A stretch of 64,000 nucleotides of DNA from Eukaryota sp. TZLM1-RC (GCA_040285825.1 JAUPSS010000005.1:1488001-1552000); one strand, 5' to 3'. Shown: positions 25,831-51,223, counted from the stretch's first letter. The notes: a model not told the origin generated them from the letters alone. Translations and numbers: made by a program.

Positions 25831-26604
25831 ATGTCCACCTCTCAGTACCCCGAATGCTTCATTTGCGTCATTCATCATGGGTTACTCGTGGATCCTGTCG
25901 TCACACGCTGTGGGCACTCATTTTGCCGAGCTTGTATTGAGCGTTGGATGGAGTATAGCGAGACCTGTCCCCATTGCAGGGAGGCTGTCTGTTATGGTAC
26001 TCTTGTCTGCAACTTCGTGTTGAGAGAGGCGATGGAGGAAATTTTAGGGTTAAGTGGGATTGGCTACCACAAGGAATCAGAACGATCGACTCCATTGGTC
26101 TTTTGTGGGAATAGCGATGAGATTGACCATCTGGGGTCAAGAATCAAAATCTTGAACAGCATTTTGGAACCCTTTGTTGCTTCTTTCTCTGCTGAAGAAA
26201 TGTTCTTCAAAGGACTGAATTCCTACAAGCGACACCAATACCAAAAAGCTGTCTTCTGGTACGAGAAAGCTGCACATGCTGGTAATGTCCAAGCTATGGT
26301 TGATTTAGCTGACTGTTTTAGAGATGGTGAAGGTGTTCAACAAGATCTTCAACAAGCGGTTTTATGGTTACAGAAGAGTGCACAAGCTGGCCATTCTGGA
26401 GCTATGGTGAGTTTAGGTTACTGTTATAGTTTTGGTAAAGGTGTTGAGCAAAACCTTGAGCAAGCGTTTCTTTATTATCAAAAAGCTGCTCATTTGGGAA
26501 ACAGGGATGCAATGTATAATTTGAGTCTGGCTTATGAATTAGGCGAGGGTGTTGTACGAGATGAACAAATGGCATTTCAATGGTACAACAGATGCTATTT
26601 ATGA
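25831..26604 (+). CDS. C3HC4 RING finger + Sel1-like repeat protein (putative E3 ligase), copy 1
   Basis: CFIC...CGHSFCRAC...CPHC; Sel1 repeats AMVDLADCFRDGEGVQQDLQQAVLWLQKSA. Confidence 0.9.
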   Translation: MSTSQYPECFICVIHHGLLVDPVVTRCGHSFCRACIERWMEYSETCPHCREAVCYGTLVCNFVLREAMEEILGLSGIGYHKESERSTPLVFCGNSDEIDHLGSRIKILNSILEPFVASFSAEEMFFKGLNSYKRHQYQKAVFWYEKAAHAGNVQAMVDLADCFRDGEGVQQDLQQAVLWLQKSAQAGHSGAMVSLGYCYSFGKGVEQNLEQAFLYYQKAAHLGNRDAMYNLSLAYELGEGVVRDEQMAFQWYNRCYL

Positions 26605-27302
26605 AGTGTCTACTTAATTGTTAGTGTATTGTAAATATTATTTATTAAGTCAATAAAATTTGTTGATTTTTGGATGCTGAAAGTAACGTCAACTTATTCA
26701 ATTTATAAAAACGACAAGGAATTGTTCGTGGTTCTTTACATTATAATTTTTTTCGTAATGATAACTGCAATAATAATGAACAAATTGAATCCAAGGGCAA
26801 CACTTTAGCTTTTGTCGTTATAGAAAACTGTTATGATTGTAAAGTCGAGATAATAGAATACCATATAAAGTTAAAGAAATACCTAAGTGTTTTGATCAAA
26901 TTTCAACCGAAAAAGGATTTTTGAGATTGAGAGCTCAAAATATATAATAAAAAACGAATAAACCAATGTGTTTGCATTAAAGTACATCAAATCTTCTTTA
27001 AATTTAATTCACTTCCCTCTAATATAGTGATTATTGTTTTTACACACATCAACTATTCAAATCAAATTCATTGTTTGTTTGCCAACATGCAGTTTTTATG
27101 GATCTGGAATCCAGTGATATTTGTGGGGTGCTTAATTAAGTATATGATCAAGACACACCAAGTCACATTTTTAACATAGTTAGAGTTAATTTACTAAAAA
27201 ATGCAATGAAAGTTTTGATGTACTTTCACAATATTTATTTATTCAATTGATTCCATCTCAATTTAAAACAAAATTTTCAATTTTCCGAAATTCCACAGAC
27301 AA

Positions 27303-28076
27303 ATGTCCACCTCTCAGTACCCCGAATGCTTCATTTGCGTCATTCATCATGGGTTACTCGTGGATCCTGTCGTTACACGCTGTGGGCACTCATTTTGCCG
27401 AGCTTGTATTGAGCGTTGGATGGAGTACAGCGAGACCTGTCCCCATTGCAGGGAGGCTGTCTGTTATGGTACTCTTGTCTGCAACTTCGTGTTGAGAGAG
27501 GCGATGGAGGAAATTTTAGGGTTAAGTGGGACTGGCTATCACAAGGAATCAGAACGATCGACTCCATTGGTCTTTTGTGGGAATAGCGATGATATTGACC
27601 ATCTCAGGTCAAGAATCAAAATCTTGAACAGCATTTTGGAACCCTTTGTTGCTTCTTTCTCTGCTGAAGAAATGTTCTTCAAAGGACTGAATTCCTACAA
27701 GCGACACCAATACCAAAAAGCTGTCTTCTGGTACGAGAAAGCTGCACATGCTGGTTATGTCCAAGCTATGGTTGATTTAGCTGACTGTTTTAGAGATGGT
27801 GAAGGTGTTCAACAAGATCTTCAACAAGCGGTTTTATGGTTACAGAAGAGTGCACAAGCTGGCCATTCTGGAGCTATGGTGAGTTTAGGTTACTGTTATA
27901 GTTTTGGTAAAGGTGTTGAGCAAAACCTTGAGCAAGCGTTTCTTTATTATCAAAGAGCTGCTCATTTGGGAAACAGGGATGCAATGTATAATTTGAGTCT
28001 GGCTTATGAATTAGGCGAGGGTGTTGTACGAGATGAACAAATGGCATTTCAATGGTACAACAGATGCTATTTATGA
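27303..28076 (+). CDS. RING + Sel1 protein, copy 2
   Basis: As copy 1, with a few substitutions. Confidence 0.9.
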   Translation: MSTSQYPECFICVIHHGLLVDPVVTRCGHSFCRACIERWMEYSETCPHCREAVCYGTLVCNFVLREAMEEILGLSGTGYHKESERSTPLVFCGNSDDIDHLRSRIKILNSILEPFVASFSAEEMFFKGLNSYKRHQYQKAVFWYEKAAHAGYVQAMVDLADCFRDGEGVQQDLQQAVLWLQKSAQAGHSGAMVSLGYCYSFGKGVEQNLEQAFLYYQRAAHLGNRDAMYNLSLAYELGEGVVRDEQMAFQWYNRCYL

Positions 28077-28773
28077 AGTGTCTACTTAATTGTTAGTATA
28101 TTGTAAATATTATTTATTAAGTCAATAAAATTTGTTGATTTTGGATTCTGAAATTAACGTCAACTTATTCAATTTATAAAAACGACAAGGAATTGTTCGT
28201 GGTTCTTTACATTATAATTTTTTTCGTAATGATAACTGCAATAATAATGAACAAATTGAATCCAAGGGCAACACTTTAGCTTTTGTCGTTATAGAAAACT
28301 GTTATGATTGTAAAGTCGAGATAATAGAATACCATATAAAGTTAAAGAAATACCTAAGTGTTTTGATCAAATTTCAACCGAAAAAGGATTTTTGAGATTG
28401 AGAGCTCAAAATATATAATAAAAAACGAATAAACCAATGTGTTTGCATTAAAGTACATCAAATCTTCTTTAAATTTAATTCACTTCCCTCTGATATAGTG
28501 ATTATTGTTTTTACACACATCAACTATTCAAATCAAATTCATTGTTTGTTTGCCAACATGCAGTTTTTATGGATCTGGAATCCAGTGATATTTGTGGGGT
28601 GCTTAATTAAGTATATGATCAAGACACACCAAGTCACATTTTTAACATAGTTAGAGTTAATTTATTAAAAAATGCAATGAAAGTTTTGATGTACTTTCAC
28701 AATATTTATTTATTCAATTGATTCCATCTCAATTTAAAACAAAATTTTCAATTTTCCGAAATTCCACAGACAA

Positions 28774-29547
28774 ATGTCCACCTCTCAGTACCCCGAATGC
28801 TTCATTTGCGTCATTCATCATGGGTTACTCGTGGATCCTGTCGTCACACGCTGTGGGCACTCATTTTGCCGAGCTTGTATTGAGCGTTGGATGGAGTACA
28901 GCGAGACCTGTCCCCATTGCAGGGAGGCTGTCTGTTATGGTACTCTTGTCTGCAACTTCGTGTTGAGAGAGGCGATGGAGGAAATTTTAGGGTTAAGTGG
29001 GATTGGCTACCACAAGGAATCAGAACGATCGACTCCATTGGTCTTTTGTGGGAATAGCGATGAGATTGACCATCTGGGGTCAAGAATCAAAATCTTGAAC
29101 AGCATTTTGGAACCCTTTGTTGCTTCTTTCTCTGCTGAAGAAATGTTCTTCAAAGGACTGAATTCCTACAAGCGACAACAATACCAAAAAGCTGTCTTCT
29201 GGTACGAGAAAGCTGCACATGCTGGTAATGTCCAAGCTATGGTTGATTTAGCTGACTGTTTTAGAGATGGTGAAGGTGTTCAACAAGATCTTCAACAAGC
29301 GGTTTTATGGTTACAGAAGAGTGCACAAGCTGGCCATTCTGGAGCTATGGTGAGTTTAGCTTACTGTTATAGTTTTGGTAAAGGTGTTGAGCAAAACCTT
29401 GAGCAAGCGTTTCTGTATTATCAAAAAGCTGCTCATTTGGGAAACAGGGATGCAATGTATAATTTGAGTCTGGCTTATGAATTAGGCGAGGGTGTTGTAC
29501 GAGATGAACAAATGGCTTTTCAATGGTACAACAGATGCTATTTATGA
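28774..29547 (+). CDS. RING + Sel1 protein, copy 3
   Basis: As copy 1. Confidence 0.9.
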   Translation: MSTSQYPECFICVIHHGLLVDPVVTRCGHSFCRACIERWMEYSETCPHCREAVCYGTLVCNFVLREAMEEILGLSGIGYHKESERSTPLVFCGNSDEIDHLGSRIKILNSILEPFVASFSAEEMFFKGLNSYKRQQYQKAVFWYEKAAHAGNVQAMVDLADCFRDGEGVQQDLQQAVLWLQKSAQAGHSGAMVSLAYCYSFGKGVEQNLEQAFLYYQKAAHLGNRDAMYNLSLAYELGEGVVRDEQMAFQWYNRCYL

Positions 29548-30244
29548 AATGTCTACTTAATTGTTAGTGTATTGTAAATATTATTTATTAAGTCAATAAA
29601 ATTTGTTGATTTTGGATTCTGAAATTAACGTCAACTTATTCAATTTATAAAAACGACAAGGAATTTTTCGTGGTTCTTTACATTATAATTTTTTTCGTAA
29701 TGATAACTGCAATAATAATGAACAAATTGAATCCAAGGGCAACACTTTAGCTTTTGTCGTTATAGAAAACTGTTATGATTGTAAAGTCGAGATAATAGAA
29801 TACCATATAAAGTTAAAGAAATACCTAAGTGTTTTGATCAAATTTCAACCGAAAAAGGATTTTTGAGATTGAGAGCTCAAAATATATAATAAAAAACGAA
29901 TAAACCAATGTGTTTGCATTAAAGTACATCAAATCTTCTTTAAATTTAATTCACTTCCCTCTGATATAGTGATTATTGTTTTTACACACATCAACTATTC
30001 AAATCAAATTCATTGTTTGTTTGCCAACATGCAGTTTTTATGGATCTGGAATCCAGTGATATTTTAGGGGTGCTTAATTAAGTATATGATCAAGACACAC
30101 CAAGTCACATTTTTAACATAGTTAGAGTTAATTTACTAAAAAATGCAATGAAAGTTTTGATGTACTTTCACAATATTGATTTATTCAATTGATTCCATCT
30201 CAATTTAAAACAAAATTTTCAATTTTCCGAAATTCCACAGACAA

Positions 30245-31018
30245 ATGTCCACCTCTCAGTACCCCGAATGCTTCATTTGCGTCATTCATCATGGTTTACT
30301 CGTGGATCCTGTCGTCACACGCTGTGGGCACTCATTTTGCCGAGCTTGTATTGAGCGTTGGATGGAGTACAGCGAGACCTGTCCCCATTGCAGGGAGGCT
30401 GTCTGTTATGGTACTCTTGTCTGCAACTTCGTGTTGAGAGAGGCGATGGAGGAAATTTTAGGGTTAAGTGGGATTGGCTACCACAAGGAATCAGAACGAT
30501 CGACTCCATTGGTCTTTTGTGGGAATAGCGATGAGATTGACCATCTGGGGTCAAGAATCAAAATCTTGAACAGCATTTTGGAACCCTTTGTTGCTTCTTT
30601 CTCTGCTGAAGAAATGTTCTTCAAAAGACTGAATTCCTACAAGCGACACCAATACCAAAAAGCTGTCTTCTGGTACGAGAAAGCTGCACATGCTGGTAAT
30701 GTCCAAGCTATGGTTGATTTAGCTGACTGTTTTAGAGATGGTGAAGGTGTTCAACAAGATCTTCAACAAGCGGTTTTATGGTTACAGAAGAGTGCACAAG
30801 CTGGCCATTCTGGAGCTATGGTGAGTTTAGGTTACTGTTATAGTTTTGGTAAAGGTGTTGAGCAAAACCTTGAGCAAGCGTTTCTTTATTATCAAAAAGC
30901 TGCTCATTTGGGAAACAGGGATGCAATGTATAATTTGAGTCTGGCTTATGAATTAGGCGAGGGTGTTGTACGAGATGAACAAATGGCATTTCAATGGTAC
31001 AACAGATGCTATTTATGA
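30245..31018 (+). CDS. RING + Sel1 protein, copy 4
   Basis: As copy 1. Confidence 0.9.
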   Translation: MSTSQYPECFICVIHHGLLVDPVVTRCGHSFCRACIERWMEYSETCPHCREAVCYGTLVCNFVLREAMEEILGLSGIGYHKESERSTPLVFCGNSDEIDHLGSRIKILNSILEPFVASFSAEEMFFKRLNSYKRHQYQKAVFWYEKAAHAGNVQAMVDLADCFRDGEGVQQDLQQAVLWLQKSAQAGHSGAMVSLGYCYSFGKGVEQNLEQAFLYYQKAAHLGNRDAMYNLSLAYELGEGVVRDEQMAFQWYNRCYL

Positions 31019-31713
31019 AGTGTCTACTTAATTGTTAGTGTATTGTAAATATTATTTATTAAGTCAATAAAATTTGTTGATTTTGGATGCTGAAATTAAC
31101 GTCAACTTATTCAATTTATAAAAACGACAAGGAATTGTTCGTGGTTCTTTACATTATAATTTTTTTCGTAATGATAACTGCAATAATAATGAACAAATTG
31201 AATCCAAGGGCAACACTTTAGCTTTTGTCGTTATAGAAAACTGTTATGATTGAAAACTCGAGATAATAGAATACCATATAAAGTTAAAGAAATACCTAAG
31301 TGTTTTGATCAAATTTCAACCGAAAAAGGATTTTTGAGATTGAGAGCTCAAAATATAATAAAAAACGAATAAACCAATGTGTTTGCATTAAAGTATATCA
31401 AATCTTCTTTAAATTTAATTCACTTCCCTCTGATATAGTGATTATTGTTTTTACACACATCAACTATTCAAATCAAATTCATTGTTTGTTTGCCAACATG
31501 CAGTTTTTATGGATCTGGAATCCAGTGATATTTGTGGGGTGCTTAATTAAGTATATGATCAAGACACACCAAGTCACATTTTTAACATAGTTAGAGTTAA
31601 TTTACTAAAAAATGCAATGAAAGTTTTGATGTACTTTCACAATATTGATTTATTCAATTGATTCCATCTCAATTTAAAACAAAATTTTCAATTTTCCGAA
31701 ATTCCACAGACAA

Positions 31714-32487
31714 ATGTCCACCTCTCAGTACCCCGAATGCTTCATTTGCGTCATTCATCATGGTTTACTCGTGGATCCTGTCGTCACACGCTGTGGGCAC
31801 TCATTTTGCCGAGCTTGTATTGAGCGTTGGATGGAGTACAGCGAGACCTGTCCCCATTGCAGGGAGGCTGTCTGTTATGGTACTCTTGTCTGCAACTTCG
31901 TGTTGAGAGAGGCGATGGAGGAAATTTTAGGGTTAAGTGGGATTGGCTACCACAAGGAATCAGAACGATCGACTCCATTGGTCTTTTGTGGGAATAGCGA
32001 TGAGATTGACCATCTGGGGTCAAGAATCAAAATCTTGAACAGCATTTTGGAACCCTTTGTTGCTTCTTTCTCTGCTGAAGAAATGTTCTTCAAAGGACTG
32101 AATTCCTACAAGCGACACCAATACCAAAAAGCTGTCTTCTGGTACGAGAAAGCTGCACATGCTGGTAATGTCCAAGCTATGGTTGATTTAGCTGACTGTT
32201 TTAGAGATGGTGAAGGTGTTCAACAAGATCTTCAACAAGCGGTTTTATGGTTACAGAAGAGTGCACAAGCTGGCCATTCTGGAGCTATGGTGAGTTTAGG
32301 TTACTGTTATAGTTTTGGTAAAGGTGTTGAGCAAAACCTTGAGCAAGCGTTTCTTTATTATCAAAAAGCTGCTCATTTGGGAAACAGGGATGCAATGTAT
32401 AATTTGAGTCTGGCTTATGAATTAGGCGAGGGTGTTGTACGAGATGAACAAATGGCATTTCAATGGTACAACAGATGCTATTTATGA
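31714..32487 (+). CDS. RING + Sel1 protein, copy 5
   Basis: As copy 1. Confidence 0.9.
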   Translation: MSTSQYPECFICVIHHGLLVDPVVTRCGHSFCRACIERWMEYSETCPHCREAVCYGTLVCNFVLREAMEEILGLSGIGYHKESERSTPLVFCGNSDEIDHLGSRIKILNSILEPFVASFSAEEMFFKGLNSYKRHQYQKAVFWYEKAAHAGNVQAMVDLADCFRDGEGVQQDLQQAVLWLQKSAQAGHSGAMVSLGYCYSFGKGVEQNLEQAFLYYQKAAHLGNRDAMYNLSLAYELGEGVVRDEQMAFQWYNRCYL

Positions 32488-33184
32488 AGTGTCTACTTAA
32501 TTGTTAGTGTATTGTAAATATTATTTATTAAGTCAATAAAATTTGTTGATTTTGGATGCTGAAAGTAACGTCAACTTATTCAATTTATAAAAACGACAAG
32601 GAATTGTTCGTGGTTCTTTACATTATAATTTTTTTCGTAATGATAACTGCAATAATAATGAACAAATTGAATCCAAGGGCAACACTTTAGCTTTTGTCGT
32701 TATAGAAAACTGTTATGATTGAAAAGTCGAGATAATAGAATACCATATAAAGTTAAAGAAATACCTAAGTGTTTTGATCAAATTTCAACCGAAAAAGGAT
32801 TTTTGAGATTGAGAGCTCAAAATATATAATAAAAAACGAATAAACCAATGTGTTTGCATTAAAGTATATCAAATCTTCTTTAAATTTAATTCACTTCCCT
32901 CTGATATAGTGATTATTGTTTTTACACACATCAACTATTCAAATCAAATTAATTGTTTGTTTGCCAACATGCAGTTTTTATGGATCTGGAATCCAGTGAT
33001 ATTTGTGGGGTGCTTAATTAAGTATATGATCAAGACACACCAAGTCACATTTTTAACATAGTTAGAGTTAATTTACTAAAAAATGCAATGAAAGTTTTGA
33101 TGTACTTTCACAATATTGATTTATTCAATTGATTCCATCTCAATTTAAAACAAAATTTTCAATTTTCCGAAATTCCACAGACAA

Positions 33185-33958
33185 ATGTCCACCTCTCAGT
33201 ACCCCGAATGCTTCATTTGCGTCATTCATCATGGGTTACTCGTGGATCCTGTCGTCACACGCTGTGGGCACTCATTTTGCCGAGCTTGTATTGAGCGTTG
33301 GATGGAGTATAGCGAGACCTGTCCCCATTGCAGGGAGGCTGTCTGTTATGGTACTCTTGTCTGCAACTTCGTGTTGAGAGAGGCGATGGAGGAAATTTTA
33401 GGGTTAAGTGGGATTGGCTACCACAAGGAATCAGAACGATCGACTCCATTGGTCTTTTGTGGGAATAGCGATGAGATTGACCATCTGGGGTCAAGAATCA
33501 AAATCTTGAACAGCATTTTGGAACCCTTTGTTGCTTCTTTCTCTGCTGAAGAAATGTTCTTCAAAGGACTGAATTCCTACAAGCGACACCAATACCAAAA
33601 AGCTGTCTTCTGGTACGAGAAAGCTGCACATGCTGGTTATGTCCAAGCTATGGTTGATTTAGCTGACTGTTTTAGAGATGGTGAAGGTGTTCAACAAGAT
33701 CTTCAACAAGCGGTTTTATGGTTACAGAAGAGTGCACAAGCTGGCCATTCTGGAGCTATGGTGAGTTTAGGTTACTGTTATAGTTTTGGTAAAGGTGTTG
33801 AGCAAAACCTTGAGCAAGCGTTTCTTTATTATCAAAGAGCTGCTCATTTGGGAAACAGGGATGCAATGTATAATTTGAGTCTGGCTTATGAATTAGGTGA
33901 GGGTGTTGTACGAGATGAACAAATGGCATTTCAATGGTACAACAGATGCTATTTATGA
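33185..33958 (+). CDS. RING + Sel1 protein, copy 6
   Basis: As copy 1. Confidence 0.9.
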   Translation: MSTSQYPECFICVIHHGLLVDPVVTRCGHSFCRACIERWMEYSETCPHCREAVCYGTLVCNFVLREAMEEILGLSGIGYHKESERSTPLVFCGNSDEIDHLGSRIKILNSILEPFVASFSAEEMFFKGLNSYKRHQYQKAVFWYEKAAHAGYVQAMVDLADCFRDGEGVQQDLQQAVLWLQKSAQAGHSGAMVSLGYCYSFGKGVEQNLEQAFLYYQRAAHLGNRDAMYNLSLAYELGEGVVRDEQMAFQWYNRCYL

Positions 33959-41162: not shown

Positions 41163-42449
41163 CTACAACTCATCGCGCTCTCCACTAACAAATGGTTCTA
41201 TCACTTTTATCCTGGTTGAAATTTTTTCCAAAACCTCTTCTTCACACCCACAAGGAGACCCCACCTCCATTGAATAAACGCATCGAGAATCTTCTCTTAT
41301 TCCATGAATAGAAGTGTTCTCGGCACATTTTAAGTCAACAGTTAGTGACCTATGTGGACCTCCCCAGCAGTAATCGCCATTTGTAAACGTCATCTGATTG
41401 GATAATTGATTGAAAGAGAATCTATCAAATTTACCCAACAAAACAGATTTTCCATTTTCAATCTGATGGGCACTTTTAAATAGAGAAAATTTATACTCAT
41501 ATGGAGAATCTTTGAACAATAATTCATTAAACTTCCCTTCTTTATCAAAAGTGGCTGATAACCAACACGTTTTCCCGTTCAAAACCTCAGAAACCTTAAT
41601 TAATTCATCCAAAATGGCCTCATGAGTTTCAATATTTTCTTTGATAAAAGTAAATTTTTTCTGCAGTAAAGACACTTCTTCTGAATGAGGTGAAGGTTTA
41701 ATAATCTTGACTTTTTTCAATAAATCAACAATTTTTGATTTAATAAGATCTGTGGATTGGGAAATTTTGTTGGTAATTGTGGATAATAGATCATTTTCTT
41801 TAAGTTGTTTTAATTCAAGTAATTGTTTTTCAAATAACTCCAATTGGCTGGAAATAAAATCAAATGAATCAACAAAAACAAGAGAATCCAAAGGTTCCTC
41901 CTCGATCAAATCCTCATCAATCAAAATCTGATTGCTGACGTCATCAACTTTCTGTTTAATTTCTTCCAAAAAAGCCTTTTGTTTTTGCAACACGAGCTTG
42001 TGCTCTTTCGCATCACCAACCATTTTCTTTCCCTCTTCCTCCATAATCTTCTTCACCCCAAGCGCCGTCTCTAAAAAGTACACCTCATCCTTCAAAGAGG
42101 CAAGTTCCTTCTTGGCTACATCTGTACATGTTTTATTGCACAATGGATCTTCATATTCGTCACTACAATCACAGCAGTCCTTAACACCATCGTTTACTTT
42201 GGAAAAAGATATGTACTTTGCTCCTAAGGGTTCCTGGGGACAACGGAATGATCGAGTGGGGGAATCAGAGATTCCGGCACATGCATTTGTGGTAGGTTCG
42301 TCCGATCCATCTGGACAGTCGCAGAAATTGTCATCGATGAATGAATAGGGGATGGTTAAAGAACCATCTGAACAGGTGAAGTGTGTTTTTAAAGCAAGGG
42401 CTAAGGAGAGAAGGAGAGAGAGGTAGAGGAATCTGTGTACAGAGGACAT
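41163..42449 (-). CDS. PRKCSH: Glucosidase II beta subunit
   Basis: Signal peptide, DDNFCDCPDGSDEP, VNDGVKDCCDCSDE, MRH domain (GDYCWGGPHRS...C), C-terminal RDEL. Confidence 0.93.
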   Translation of the reverse strand: MSSVHRFLYLSLLLSLALALKTHFTCSDGSLTIPYSFIDDNFCDCPDGSDEPTTNACAGISDSPTRSFRCPQEPLGAKYISFSKVNDGVKDCCDCSDEYEDPLCNKTCTDVAKKELASLKDEVYFLETALGVKKIMEEEGKKMVGDAKEHKLVLQKQKAFLEEIKQKVDDVSNQILIDEDLIEEEPLDSLVFVDSFDFISSQLELFEKQLLELKQLKENDLLSTITNKISQSTDLIKSKIVDLLKKVKIIKPSPHSEEVSLLQKKFTFIKENIETHEAILDELIKVSEVLNGKTCWLSATFDKEGKFNELLFKDSPYEYKFSLFKSAHQIENGKSVLLGKFDRFSFNQLSNQMTFTNGDYCWGGPHRSLTVDLKCAENTSIHGIREDSRCVYSMEVGSPCGCEEEVLEKISTRIKVIEPFVSGERDEL

Positions 42450-42482
42450 TGGCTAAGAACCTTTGATGAGTTGAATTAACTT

Positions 42483-42649
42483 CTGTGGTTTTCATTTGAA
42501 ATGCATACTTTCGTCAAGCATCATTCAAACTTATTCCAAGAACTTTCATTCTTGGTGAGATCATCCACAGACGTTCTAGAATCCTCGAATAATTGGCCAC
42601 CAATCTCAGTGAGCCCATTTCTCCTCTAAAACAATACGTAGCTTTGAAG
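42483..42649 (-). ncRNA. Candidate omegaRNA scaffold of Fanzor D
   Basis: Two GAAA-tetraloop hairpins (CCAAGAAT-GAAA-GTTCTTGG; TTTGAA..ATGC..AC-GAAA-GT..GCAT-TTCAAA). Internal CTGTGG is complementary to the terminal CCACAG. Confidence 0.7.
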
Positions 42650-44474
42650 CTAGTTTCTTTGTGGTCTCTGGAACGCTTCTGGTCTTGTTCCATAGTAGTG
42701 CTCACAAATTGCAATTTCTAGCTGATTTAGTGATGCAGAAATGTCTCTAGACCATACTTGATTACATTCCGGACAACTGAAATAGGCGTTGTGAACTTTA
42801 ACTTCACGATCAACTTCTCTATAGATCTTTTGGTGTAGCATCTTGCAGCAGTTCACCTTTGCAGATGTCATATATTCATCTCCGATCTTCACATTAGCAA
42901 ATGAACATTGTAACAACTTGAGAAACGCCTTACGTGGTGTTTTCACTTTTTGACATGATGGACCACCACCTCCGTTGCCAAACCACACCTTTGCTTCTCG
43001 ACCGTTTGCAAATTTTTCACTCTGTTGATAATTGAGCTGGATCTTTTCTGTTTTCTTATAAAGAAGTCAAATGTGTTTCTCCTCAATGCTTTTCGAGCTA
43101 TCAGATATAACTGCTGCTTAAGCAATGGTCGTCTTACGTTATTACCTTCATTGTCCTTATAGTCACCGATAGTTGATACTTCAAGCAGATAATTGTTCAA
43201 TTTCTGCACGTCATAAACATCTATTGATGGGTCAGTGAAGCGGTGTGGTTGATTTTTCGTTACTTTGGTGCCAAGAAGATATTGGAAACGGTCGGCCCTG
43301 AACGTGTTCCAATACTGGAACCACATAGATTTGAGTGGTTGGGGTCGATAGCCCAGAACACCATTTCCGTTTGGTCATCAGGTGCCTGCCACTCAGTAGC
43401 TTTTGGTTTCTGGCGAGGTCTCTGTTGTTCAACCTTGGCTTGCAAGGTATGTTTTCTATTCCAAGTGGTTTCGTAGTAGTCAAGTTCCCCTCTGGATCTC
43501 TTATTATTCAAGGCTTCTCCGGACAATCTCACTCGTGTTGCTTTGGGGTGCGGTTTGAAAGTTATACGGACACTATCACCATTAGAAGACATGGTGTAGT
43601 CATTAGCTTTTGTTTTAAAAAATAAATAAGGGTTTTGCAAAATTGTTTGTGATGTGTTTTTGGAGATAAAATGGTTGAGAACCCATGTGGAAAAGGGGAC
43701 AAAAGCAGGCTTCAAACTAGCGATGGGAGTGAGTCTATGTCGTCTAAAGGTATATGGAAAGGCTTGCTCCAGGTAGTTTTGGATTGTTAAGCTGCAACGA
43801 AAGATGTAGGTACTGTTCTCTTGATTAAGAGTCACTCTTCGAGAAGAAAGAAGAGTGTTGTACCTTTGAGGATCACCAACCAAAAAGTTAAACAGACTAA
43901 GAGCCATGGTATGGTGAGTGTTGAACCAAGGAAGAAGAGGTTCACGAAAGTTCGTGCTGTTGTGAAGAACAGAACCAGCATAAGTGAATGGTGCAGGGCA
44001 GTTATAACCTACCGCATACGAGCGGAAGAAGTTAAGCTTCCAAGACACAAGTCCATCAGCAAGAAGCTGCTGGTAGTTGCCTTGCAGCTGGCGGTACTTT
44101 GCATCCACTAGTTGTTGTAGAGGCCTACTAGTGGGTAGTGCATGATTACGACCTGTTCTTGACAAGAACAAGACAGCAAACGGCCATGATGTAGAGATTC
44201 GCTCGAGCTTCTCATACACATGGCCTTTGCCAGGTCTGTTAAATGGATGTCTGACTTTTGGCTTAGAGACCGCCACAAAGTCAAGACACTGGATCCAGAA
44301 TTGATGCTGAGTCAGGAAATGACTGTCTTCAGGGAAGCGCACAGCAAAAACTCTGGCCAACAAACTGCCGAGGTGAGCCATGGTGGTCACCTTGGTCAGC
44401 TGTCCATCAATGTAATCACACACTGGCCCCTCAAAGAACTGATGAAGGGAGCAGGCACGTGTCCATGTCTGCAT
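42650..44474 (-). CDS. Fanzor RNA-guided endonuclease D (~608 aa after two 1-nt homopolymer corrections)
   Basis: RuvC-I WAIDPNHSN, VWFGNG, RuvC-II GDEYMTSAK, zinc finger NCC...CPEC, RuvC-III WSRDISASLN, C-terminal GTRPEAF. Split over ORFs 43260-44474, 42943-43326 and 42650-42988. Confidence 0.88.
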
Positions 44475-46467
44475 AGTCCTTACTGAAAACGGAAGGTGCA
44501 GACAATCAAAAATGATTGATTTCTCAGTTTCAGTTACTTTTAAATTTGGTGTATTTTCAACTCCTTACATCCACAAAACAATGAAACATGCACAAACTGA
44601 TAAATAGACACATTTATAATAGATACTGGACATGCTTTAAGCATTTTCTTTCCTAAAAATAGTAAACTGATGCGAAATTTGACGAAATTGTTGTTAGTCA
44701 AAGCAGTTGTTCGTTTAATCAAGGGTGTTTGTAGATTCGAAAAATTCGTAAAGCCTCACAATTTAATTATCTTATTCAGTACAAACACGTTACCAAGGGA
44801 AGTCACAACACCCGTTTCTTTCTTCCCATTTCTTTCCTTCTTTGACGAAGAACCTTTTGCTCCTCGTTCAACTATATCTGAATTCGCCATGGATCTTTGT
44901 GGAACTGTTGGCTTTTCTATTATAGCGATTATAGGTTTCGTTTAGTGCGCTCACACATTGACTATAAAACATATAAAATAGACTAACAAAAGACAGTCTG
45001 TAGAGGCACTGCTGGCTATTCTTGAGTCTAAACTCGAGTCTATTGCAGATCGTCCATCCCAAGCTGTGCCAACAACTTCTGCTGTGTCACCCCTTTCAGC
45101 TGCACTTCTTGTTTTGAAACTAGACATCTGAGTACTTATTATTACCTTGTCTCTCTACTTCGCCCTCTTCACCCTCTTTCTACTCATCTTTCTTCCATAG
45201 AAGATGTTCCTCCTGTCTTCACTTGTATTACCATCAGTTATCAATATACACCCTTACACCTCTGGTATCGTTTGTTCACTCTCTACGAATCAACTCACTC
45301 CAATCTTATTCTACTCCAGTCTAACCTACTGCTAATATACATGAACTTCTAAAGTCTAATGAGCAGAAGATTTTTGAACTTAATGAACTCCAATTGAAAC
45401 TGCATTGAAGACACTTGTAATGTTAGTCAACATGGCTTCCTTGCAGAGATTGATTTTGACCAATTTCATATTAATGTAGTGTGATACGATGATAAGTCTG
45501 AAGACATCCACGCTGCTATGAGTGACACATATCCCCTTGAATTCAGGTTCGAAATCTTGAGAAAGCAGATTTTCTGGTTAATAACCTATTTCTGAACCTT
45601 CACTGTTTTGAATGTGCGTGGTTGATAATAATTTGATTCAATACTAGTGAATAATATTTATATAATAATATATATAATAATATATAATATTAGTGACGGT
45701 AGTATTATAATTGATTTAAATTGTAACTAAAAGTGCTAATACTCACCACATAACTAATAGTTCCAAAATAAAATATTATCGATTCATGTTTTATTATAGT
45801 GTTCGTTCAACTGTTGGTAAAAAGGAACCTTGTTGATAAAAACTAAAAAAGAATTAACTTGAAATTTGTCAAAATGTGAATTGCATTTTATTGGCTGATT
45901 CACAAGAGTGCCTTTTTTTTCTTTTTTTTGCGTCTTGGGTTTGTCAAACAGGGTTAACTTGTTGTTAGTCAAATGAAATTGTTTAGCTAGACACATAATG
46001 CAAATGAAGTGCACAACTCCCTGGAGATTTTGGACAAGTATAAAGCAGTATACATAGACCAACAGTGATTGTGTTAAACTATTATTTCTTCAACTTTTGG
46101 GTTATAAGAAATGAAGATATCATTTTTGTTTTGTAGGAGGAAATTGTTGCCTCAGATACACACCTTGGAATTTCAACTTTCTCCTGTTGAAATTCCAAAA
46201 TTGCAATGACTCTATGGCAAAAATAACCCCAATCAATTCAAGTCTGAAATTCTGTGTTGAAGTGGAATTACAGCACCGACCACTGGAATTTCTTAATCTT
46301 TTTTATTGAACTACAAAACTTAATAAAATTAAATCAGCACTAAAGGATCTAAATTCAATGAACCAAGATTTCCTCCACAAAACCTGACCTGATCAAACTT
46401 GACTCTTCATCATCCACCACCCATCTCAACACTAAACTCTTACTTGACATTTCTTTATTGTTAGCAC

Positions 46468-49261: not shown

Positions 49262-51223
49262 TCATCTCCTCAGCAGAGCATCTGGGCAAATGTATCTTTC
49301 CGGCCACAATTCCGCTTTCTTCTTAATTTGAATATTTTTTGCAGCGGAAATATCTCTGTCATATACTATTTGACACTCAGTACAAATACGCATCTGCCAT
49401 GAGCCTGCTTGAATATTCTCGGCCATGCAACAACTTGACATTTTGCTTGTATTAAATTCACTGGTTGACAAGTGCTTCACGTCCTTTTGATAACACAACC
49501 ATTTTCTGAAAGCCCTTGCTGATCCATATCGATTGACTTTTCGGCAATGAGAAGGGAAATTAGCAGAACCCACAGCAAGATAGAGTTTTTCAGGATGTCC
49601 AGCCAGACTTTGAAATTTGTTGAGACTCTCTCTGAACCGTCTCTCTTTTCGTCTGCGGTTATCAAATTTAATTATTTTCCATTTCTGGCGATTACTTTCC
49701 AAATACACTTTCCTCCTGACCAAATTCCAATGGTTCAAATATTGGTTGAAATTTTGAACGGAATATTGGTTGGGAGAGTGTTTACTGGGTGAAGGTTTTG
49801 TCCTGTACCTCCTGCCAGTTGGACAAGGAATAACTCCACATTGATTATCATTTAAGAAGTAACCACATAATCTTGATTGGCCAAGATCAACGCCGATAAG
49901 GGGCCTTTCAGGTAAAATTTCGACTGGATGTCTACGTCTTCGACGGGGCATTTTTTTAGTACCCTTCAACTGTGTTTCTCTGGTTTTGTTGGCATTAGGG
50001 TCACTTTTCATTTCATTTTTTGATCTTCGTTTCTTTTTCGGTGGTTCATCCAGCTCATCTGTGTTTTCTGAGTCATTATTTTTACCTTCAAAGGTCAAAA
50101 GCAGTTCATTACCATTAGTTTTCAATAAAATTTTGTTAAATCTATTTTTCAAACTTTTTTTCTGTTGATATTGAATTTTTGGTAAGGACATTGTTTGAAT
50201 ACTCGTTTCAGACATGTATTTTTGATAAACTTTGTTTTGGAAGATGATCCTTCAATAATTGGAAATTTTTTTCACAGAGTGGAAAATTTGTGAAGGTACC
50301 TCAATAAATTTAGAACCTTTATGAGAAGCTAAAGGTATTATTCTAAATTTCTTCCAGCAATGCATATGAGAAAAGAAAGTGAGTAAGTATTTTGAAATTT
50401 TAAGATTGAAGAGAAAAAGCTCACTAATTTCCTTTGATGAAAAAGTGATTTTTATCATGTGAGGACAGTAGGGAGGCAGTGGTAGGAAATATTTGAAAGA
50501 GATTCAAGATAAACCTACATGCATTCAATAAAAAAAATCTTTCTCTTGAATTATTCAAATTGAAATTGATGAGGTATTCAAGAACAGAATCAACTACTAC
50601 TTCCTCGGGTTGGGCTAGTAGTTCATCTGGCAAAAAGTGAAAGAATATTATTTGCAAAGACATTTGTTTTTATTCAGGGCTCTACAATGAGCACGAATAA
50701 AGTTTTTTGTCCAGGATTGACAAATTTTGGGTAAACATGTCTTAACGTTGGAGGCCAATTGACGAGCACGACAGGCAAGATAAGAAGAAAGCCCTTTTCT
50801 ATTGATAAAATTACAGTTCTGGGACTGCAGCCAATCATTGAGGAAAAGATTGAATGAATTTCTGTAAGGCACTAAAGAATTTTCCCACACAGAAACAAGA
50901 GGCCTGTCTTGTGGGCATTCAGGAAGAAATCCATTGTAAAAGATATGGAGTAATTGGCGTTGGCCTTTAGATGTGGAAGGCTTTGGAAAAGAACCAGTGG
51001 TGATGACGGTCATAAACAGATACCATACATCCTGTTCCACTAAAGCTCTTGATGCCAACGGAAAATTTAGAAGAAAAGATTGAAGTAATAAAGACGCTTC
51101 ATGACAAATCTCGGTGACCACAGGAAGGTCAGTCCGAATTTGTTGCACCGCTGCATGGGTCAGCAGCGAGTTAAGTGCACAAGACCGAGTGAATACACGT
51201 GACACAGAGTGGGTGTCTGTCAT
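49262..51223 (-). CDS. Fanzor RNA-guided endonuclease E (~652 aa after 4-5 homopolymer indel corrections; possibly a young pseudogene)
   Basis: N-terminus FTRSCALNSLL (cf. D WTRACSLHQFF); NLS-like PPKKKRR and PRRRRR; RuvC-I IGVDLG; AVGSANF; RuvC-II SEFNTSK; SCC...CTEC; RuvC-III YDRDISAAKNI. Confidence 0.85.

Follow-up and report, generated by a model that had tools for sequence, protein, structure and literature searches.

The window analysed here is a stretch of 64,000 nucleotides from Skoliomonas litria TZLM1-RC (assembly GCA_040285825.1, JAUPSS010000005.1:1488001-1552000). Three consecutive ORFs were located on its minus strand, at 44474-43260 (404 aa), 43326-42943 (127 aa) and 42988-42650 (112 aa). 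In the initial annotation these had been joined by one added A at each of two A-runs and read as a near-intact, potentially active Fanzor nuclease that gene callers would miss. The joining itself was reproduced: addition of one A at 43264-43266 and of one at 43013-43017 gave 608 codons with zero internal stops, and both junctions were exact. The ORFs are part of a larger element, referred to as copy D, which ends close to a host gene on the same strand. The features of the locus are:

42482..45824, minus strand: copy D, whole element, ~3.34 kb, delimited by blastn against the sister loci L001-L007
43260..44474, minus strand: ORF piece 1, 404 aa, with the WED/REC N-terminal region and RuvC-I, terminating at TAA
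43344..43346, minus strand: codon of the RuvC-I aspartate, D377 of AIDPNHSNLCG (motif at 43352-43320), aligned with 'IDPN' of SpuFz1
43260..43262, minus strand: lesion 1, nonsense codon TAA against CAA (Q405) in seven of seven sisters, C>T at 43262
43226..43233, minus strand: lesion 2, 4-bp deletion outside a homopolymer, at ~43229/43230 with an alignment ambiguity of a few bases
43013..43017, minus strand: lesion 3, loss of 1 bp from an A-run, A5 in copy D against A6 in seven of seven sisters
42953..42955, minus strand: R509C (CGT>TGT) in the 'SRQ' motif, Arg in each of the six relatives aligned, which represent three Skoliomonas strains
42875..42877, minus strand: codon of the relocated RuvC-II glutamate, E of GDEYMTS (motif at 42883-42863), aligned with DEYKTS of SpuFz1
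42764..42853, minus strand: zinc ribbon (TNB), NCCKMLH ... CPEC, within the PF07282 match on residues 34-88 of piece 3
42743..42745, minus strand: codon of the RuvC-III aspartate, D of SRDISAS, aligned with 'NRD' of SpuFz1
42482..42649, minus strand: conserved 3' non-coding tail, candidate omegaRNA scaffold, terminating in ...GAAAACCACAGA
41163..42449, minus strand: host gene for the glucosidase II beta subunit (Pfam PF12999 and PF13015), with signal peptide and RDEL end

The codons TAA, TAG and TGA each terminate long host ORFs in the window, including the gene that ends in RDEL. An alternative code with TAA read as Gln, as in some diplomonads, was ruled out on these grounds; the S. litria TZLM1-RC genome uses the standard genetic code, and TAA acts as a true stop. 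An intron that would bridge the first break was also rejected. The sole GT..AG span across this break is 43 nt long and its removal leads to a stop, and the sister copies read a continuous ORF at the same place. An in-frame ATG extension upstream of 44474 is present in the sisters; it was judged non-coding because the homologues from strains GEM-RC1 and RCL begin where the 44474 ATG lies.

From 5' to 3' the element comprises ~1.3-1.35 kb of non-coding DNA, then the interrupted Fanzor1 ORF, and finally a 3' tail ~168-169 nt long with a sharp boundary at ...CCACAGA. Only short ORFs were present in the 5' ~1.3 kb, and comparison with the GEM-RC1 relative gave no cross-species coding signal. Neither a second conserved ORF or transposase nor terminal inverted repeats were found in the element. 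The 5' homology of the sisters extends 116-159 nt further upstream than copy D, the 5' end of which is probably truncated by ~100-145 nt relative to theirs.

Several minor features were also recorded in the 5' part (window 44475-45824, minus strand; L005 2248-3500). The subterminal direct repeat TTTCACCAACACTAT occurs three times, and an ORF of 57-64 aa (MSSFKTRSAAERGD...) is present in copy D and in both sisters whose 5' regions were listed. The outermost 5' segment exists in two variants, one in L001 and L006 and the other in L005 and L007. Copy D carries ~120 extra bases around 45600-45750 that are absent from the sisters.

Catalytic motifs, profile matches and predicted fold

The RuvC aspartate of IDPN, the glutamate of DEYMTS, the aspartate of SRD and the zinc finger (CC..H..CPEC), which had been named in the initial annotation, were all located, and the triad of D, relocated E and D is complete across the pieces of copy D. 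A D-x-N variant at RuvC-I had been named for SpuFz1, and the alignment does show IDPN in this protein; D377 also aligns with the 'DPG' of classic Fanzor1. At the canonical RuvC-II position (strand VWFGNGG) no acidic residue is present, G/N standing there instead. A rearranged RuvC-II site with a relocated glutamate has been described for Fanzors (PMC10530073). The stretch NCCKMLH...CPEC...SRDISAS occupies 42853-42731, and the aspartate D606 in the corresponding 'NRD' of SpuFz1 lies at the active site (PMC10432273).

The published signatures of Fanzor1, 'DPG' at RuvC-I and 'TDG' in the WED domain (Yoon et al. 2023, PMC10711439), occur only as variants. The clade has DPN, as does SpuFz1, and copy D has SNG at the place of the classic TDG; its relatives have TDG, SDG or TNG. 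Because these variants lie inside an otherwise matching alignment, DPN and SNG were counted as deviations that do not exclude the clade from Fanzor1.

Conventional domain searches detected little of the protein. Pfam PF07282 (Cas12f1-like TNB) matched piece 3 with an E-value of 6.4e-06 at 26.7 bits, just over its cutoff of 26.3, and scored 20.5-28.1 bits in the relatives; the NCBIfam search gave TnpB matches below threshold only. A profile built from Skoliomonas sequences alone had no significant match in the PDB, its zinc ribbon matching LaTranC only marginally (E 0.18), and the clade is therefore highly divergent. When the same profile was compared by hhalign with classic Fanzor1-like proteins, the probability was 99.9% with an E-value of 6.6e-35 over 543 columns. 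The link to the Fanzor1 structures in the PDB thus needed a bridging profile through the classic Fanzor1 sequences. With this combined profile SpuFz1 (8gkh) was matched over its full length at E 2.9e-47, PpFz1 at E 1.7e-34 and GtFz1 at E 1.5e-31, while TnpB and Cas12f were far weaker.

The fold was examined on AlphaFold2 models of two intact relatives, P0012 and P0128, and not on copy D. The model of P0012 from GEM-RC1 reached a pLDDT of 84.7 and a pTM of 0.80. In the Foldseek search its top seven matches were all Fanzor1, with a TM of 0.60 to SpuFz1, and Fanzor2 ranked 29th with the RuvC part alone aligned. P0128, a 609-aa sister from the 90% cluster of copy D piece 1, was modelled with a pLDDT of 80.2. 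Its Z-scores, over 455-508 residues, were 21.1 for GtFz1, 20.0 for PpFz1 and 17.5-19.5 for SpuFz1, against 14.4 or less for Cas12 and TnpB. The profile and AlphaFold comparison with Fanzor structures that had been proposed for the locus thus returned the Fanzor1 fold, which has an enlarged REC with long paired helices, a WED domain, a split RuvC and a zinc ribbon, and the original identification as a Fanzor could be sharpened to Fanzor1 (profile 99.9%, fold Z 17.5-21.1). Both the sequence profiles and the predicted fold lend good support to the placement of the family in Fanzor1 proper.

Among characterised systems, SpuFz1 of Spizellomyces punctatus (PDB 8GKH, 9CEU-9CEZ; Saito et al. 2023, PMC10432273) is of similar length (~600-640 aa) and shares the fold over ~500 residues (Z 17.5-19.5, TM 0.60). 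Both have IDPN at RuvC-I, the relocated glutamate in DEY.TS, NRD or SRD at RuvC-III and a C-terminal zinc ribbon, and both are encoded by a single-ORF element with the ORF close to the 3' end. In contrast, the identity between SpuFz1 and the Skoliomonas family is only 13-16%. SpuFz1 elements possess well-conserved terminal inverted repeats (PMC10432273), whereas none were found in the Skoliomonas element, which bears ~1.3 kb of non-coding 5' DNA and is represented in the window by a pseudogene. Activity and omegaRNA have been demonstrated for SpuFz1; both are putative for the Skoliomonas family.

The model of the intact sister was structurally closest to GtFz1 from Guillardia theta (Z 21.1 over 455 residues) and PpFz1 from Parasitella parasitica (Z 20.0 over 503 residues; PDB 9CER and 9CF0/9CF1, PMC11423790), which have the same domain order. 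Identity to them is only 12-13%, however, both are larger and contain extra insertions, and their hosts, a cryptophyte and a fungus, are unrelated to the metamonad. Fanzor2 (ApmFz2, PDB 9B0L) and ISDra2 TnpB (PDB 8H1J, 8EXA) share the RuvC and zinc-ribbon core and presumably the RNA-guided mechanism, and a relocated glutamate is also found in Fanzor2 (PMC10530073). They differ in that the C-terminal RuvC part alone aligns, over ~240 columns (Foldseek ranks 29 and 50), and in that they are without the large REC half of the Fanzor1 type.

Sister copies and lesions of copy D

Copy D was 91-97% identical at the nucleotide level to seven sister loci (L001-L007, local blastn) from 45824 to 42481/2, and so represents a single copy of a ~3.3-kb dispersed element. 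The family as a whole is multi-copy and dispersed, with sharp 3' ends. The protein search with piece 1 gave 18 matches, 17 from TZLM1-RC (GCA_040285825.1) and one from the sister strain GEM-RC1. Piece 1 was 95% identical to P0001 and shared its 90%-identity cluster with the 609-aa sisters. This cluster, around the best match, has 24 members, among them the 404-aa fragment of copy D itself, three proteins of 609 aa (KAL0225856.1, KAL0215550.1 and KAL0223918.1) and one of 607 aa.

The genes of the three 609-aa proteins (sisters P0125, P0128 and P0134) are uninterrupted ORFs of 1830 nt that translate straight to the deposited sequences, and they are annotated merely as "hypothetical protein". The expectation that gene callers would miss this nuclease was thus not confirmed, as intact sisters had already been called under that label. 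Since uninterrupted 609-residue sisters exist elsewhere in the genome, copy D is not a hidden working gene. In the 607-aa sister P0137 (KAL0211183.1, L007 3501-5324) the ORF is open, and a 6-nt in-frame deletion removes the Asp-Pro of IDPN and hence the catalytic aspartate of RuvC-I.

A search of 1.84 billion cluster representatives gave 110 matches. All full-length close relatives with a source looked up came from TZLM1-RC, GEM-RC1 or TZLM3-RCL; among the intact ones, RCL contributed eight proteins 592 aa long and three 605 aa long, and GEM-RC1 several with 589-590 aa. The more distant matches covered only the C-terminus and were to metagenomic Fanzor1-like proteins, and the clade appears to be confined to the three Skoliomonas strains. 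Within the library that could be searched, no paper joined Fanzor with Skoliomonas or metamonads. For P0012 of GEM-RC1 (L008 2501-4299) the annotated 589-aa model requires an 'intron' of 29 nt, and tblastx placed a frame shift between ~3403 and ~3544 of this locus. The 29 nt may be a very short real intron or an annotator's patch over a frameshift. GEM-RC1 has four other family members of 589 or 590 aa.

The lesions of copy D were called by DNA alignment with the seven sister copies, on the assembly sequence of S. litria TZLM1-RC. Three lesions break the ORF, and none of them is shared by the sisters. The initial annotation had attributed both breaks to slips in A-runs. This held for 43013-43017, with A5 instead of A6, but not for 43264-43266, where the break consists of CAA>TAA and, ~30 nt further downstream, the 4-bp deletion. 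At this deletion the sisters have CTGACCCACTCATCAAT and copy D has CTGACC----CATCAAT (over a shorter span, CTGACCCACTCATC and CTGACC----CATC). After the two-A repair 12 residues at the first site are out of frame, VTKNQPHRFTDP in place of the sisters' QRKINHSASLTHS; the frame is regained numerically, since +1 combined with -4 makes -3. The repair at the second site agrees with the sisters (KVKKFANGRE).

The consensus of the eight copies is an open frame of 609 codons. Over the ORF copy D differs from it by 42 substitutions, compared with 11-19 in the intact copies, and ~27 amino-acid replacements separate copy D from the family consensus. Its private changes comprise 26 nonsynonymous and 9 synonymous ones, against a random expectation of 3.5:1 (binomial 0.37), and thus look neutral. 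The changes common to the two older copies, by comparison, have a ratio of 9:8 (P=0.02), a sign that the source gene was once under selection. Copy D is a pseudogene, because the TAA is a true stop, two frameshifts are present, no intron rescues the frame, ~27 replacements have accumulated and the ratio looks neutral. The view of copy D as near-intact and potentially active was accordingly abandoned in the face of the nonsense codon, the two frameshifts, the replacements (R509C among them) and the neutral-looking 26:9. It is also unfit for "repair" and expression, as the repaired product would contain 12 wrong residues and retain Cys at an Arg position. Judged from their open frames, the three intact annotated 609-residue copies, and not copy D, are the candidates for activity.

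The 3' end and the adjacent host genes

The 3' end of copy D (42482) lies 32 nt upstream of the ATG (42449) of a host gene in the same orientation, which encodes the glucosidase II beta subunit. This start codon is genuine, because the protein begins with a signal peptide. A same-strand annotated ATG was present 13-79 nt past the 3' end in five of the seven family members whose 3' end is complete, a count that covers these seven only. The five intervals are 42449-42482 in the window, 4885-4900 in L002, 5498-5512 in L004, 5498-5539 in L006 and 5492-5572 in L007.

The tail of copy D differs from the family consensus at one of 169 positions, compared with 2.6% in the ORF. Together with the last 150 nt of the ORF it forms the best-conserved part of the copy, with 2 differences in 319 nt where the remainder of the ORF predicts ~9.5 (Poisson 0.004). 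The fold z-score of the tail was -2.33, a modest value. No compensatory pairs (0) were detected among the eight copies, which are too similar for covariation to be informative. In characterised Fanzor1 systems the omegaRNA derives from the 3' end of the element, with the flanking DNA as guide (PMC10432273). By analogy, the tail and the end of the ORF may tentatively be proposed as a candidate omegaRNA scaffold and the host DNA past 42482 as a candidate guide.

Competing readings and other features of the window

Copy D is very probably a dead insertion of a young, multi-copy, Skoliomonas-specific Fanzor1 family that has decayed neutrally. The ancestral gene would have encoded a Fanzor1-type RNA-guided nuclease of 609 aa, composed of an N-terminal WED/REC half, a zinc ribbon and a split RuvC whose triad is D377, the GDEY glutamate at its relocated position and the SRD aspartate. 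Once inserted, copy D would have decayed neutrally, gaining CAA>TAA, the 4-bp deletion, the 1-bp deletion in the A-run and the ~27 replacements, so that it would be unable to make the nuclease. Intact members, if they resemble characterised Fanzor1 and TnpB systems, would be co-transcribed with an omegaRNA at their 3' end. Its scaffold would be the ~170-nt conserved tail with the ORF end, and host DNA immediately beyond ...CCACAGA would act as the guide; cleavage and mobility are likewise putative.

Could copy D instead be intact in the living cell, every break of the ORF being an assembly or consensus error? The assembly was produced from Nanopore R9.4 reads at 41x and corrected with Illumina reads at 206x (PMC11316075). 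A5 instead of A6 at 43013-43017 has the form of a classic Nanopore homopolymer error, short-read correction is harder in repeats of 96% identity and can be imperfect there, and an assembly error in this A-run is possible. Lesion 3 is, however, the sole break that is plausible as such an error, and it makes no difference, because the other two remain. These are a C>T substitution and a deletion outside a homopolymer, both private to copy D; mis-mapped reads from paralogues would have drawn the sequence towards the consensus and not away from it. Among the young copies, copy D has also accumulated the largest number of substitutions; its N:S ratio looks neutral, R509C replaces an Arg common to all aligned relatives, and the genome had been corrected at high Illumina depth. 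An intact copy D is therefore highly improbable. An assignment to Fanzor2, prokaryotic TnpB or bacterial contamination can hardly be entertained at all. It would fit the Pfam result, which is a generic TnpB/Cas12f zinc ribbon barely over threshold, and the failure of the family-only profile to find a significant PDB match by sequence. The full-length profile-profile and fold matches nevertheless favour Fanzor1 over Fanzor2 and TnpB, and the copies lie on Mb-scale contigs of three Skoliomonas assemblies, the fetched loci being flanked by eukaryotic genes (AAA proteasome ATPase, Piezo, EB1, protein kinase and SPT16).

Two further readings concern the position of the 3' ends. The dead element may have been co-opted, its 3' end serving as putative promoter or leader of the glucosidase II beta gene and its tail being kept by selection at the level of the host. 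We regard this as possible but unlikely; it is compatible with a dead insertion and not an alternative to it. The element end 32 nt before a genuine ATG, the same-strand ATG beyond five of the seven complete 3' ends and the 2 differences in the last 319 nt point in this direction. The low divergence of the tail is explained equally well by constraint on the source element before insertion (omegaRNA), though, and gene models may begin just after repeat-masked DNA, as RepeatMasker was used in the annotation pipeline (PMC11316075). A bolder and rather improbable proposal is that the clade is active through its intact 609-aa copies and inserts in a directed manner just upstream of host start codons. 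The leader of the host gene would then form the guide part of each copy's omegaRNA, and dead copies such as D would end as host promoter or 5' UTR. If true, this would constitute a targeting rule together with a spread that needs neither terminal inverted repeats nor a transposase, which is undescribed for any Fanzor or TnpB.

Natural intact sister genes are available in place of a repaired copy D. The family represents a divergent Fanzor1 clade, ~15% identical to SpuFz1, barely visible to Pfam and multi-copy in three Skoliomonas genomes. Its hosts are free-living anaerobic metamonads, by which the known host range of Fanzor1 is extended, and the clade offers new natural pairs of nuclease and candidate omegaRNA for testing.

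Two other features of the window were noted. A second, distantly related Fanzor ("Fanzor E"), likewise split into several ORFs, is located at 49262-51223 on the minus strand. It was 20% identical to piece 1 of copy D in tblastn (E 1.5e-05), and its C-terminal ORF of 317 aa matched PF07282 with an E-value of 3.2e-07. A gene of 280 aa begins on the same strand ~340 nt downstream of it. At 25831-33958 on the plus strand a tandem gene array was found, consisting of six ORFs of exactly 257 aa each at a spacing of ~1.47 kb.
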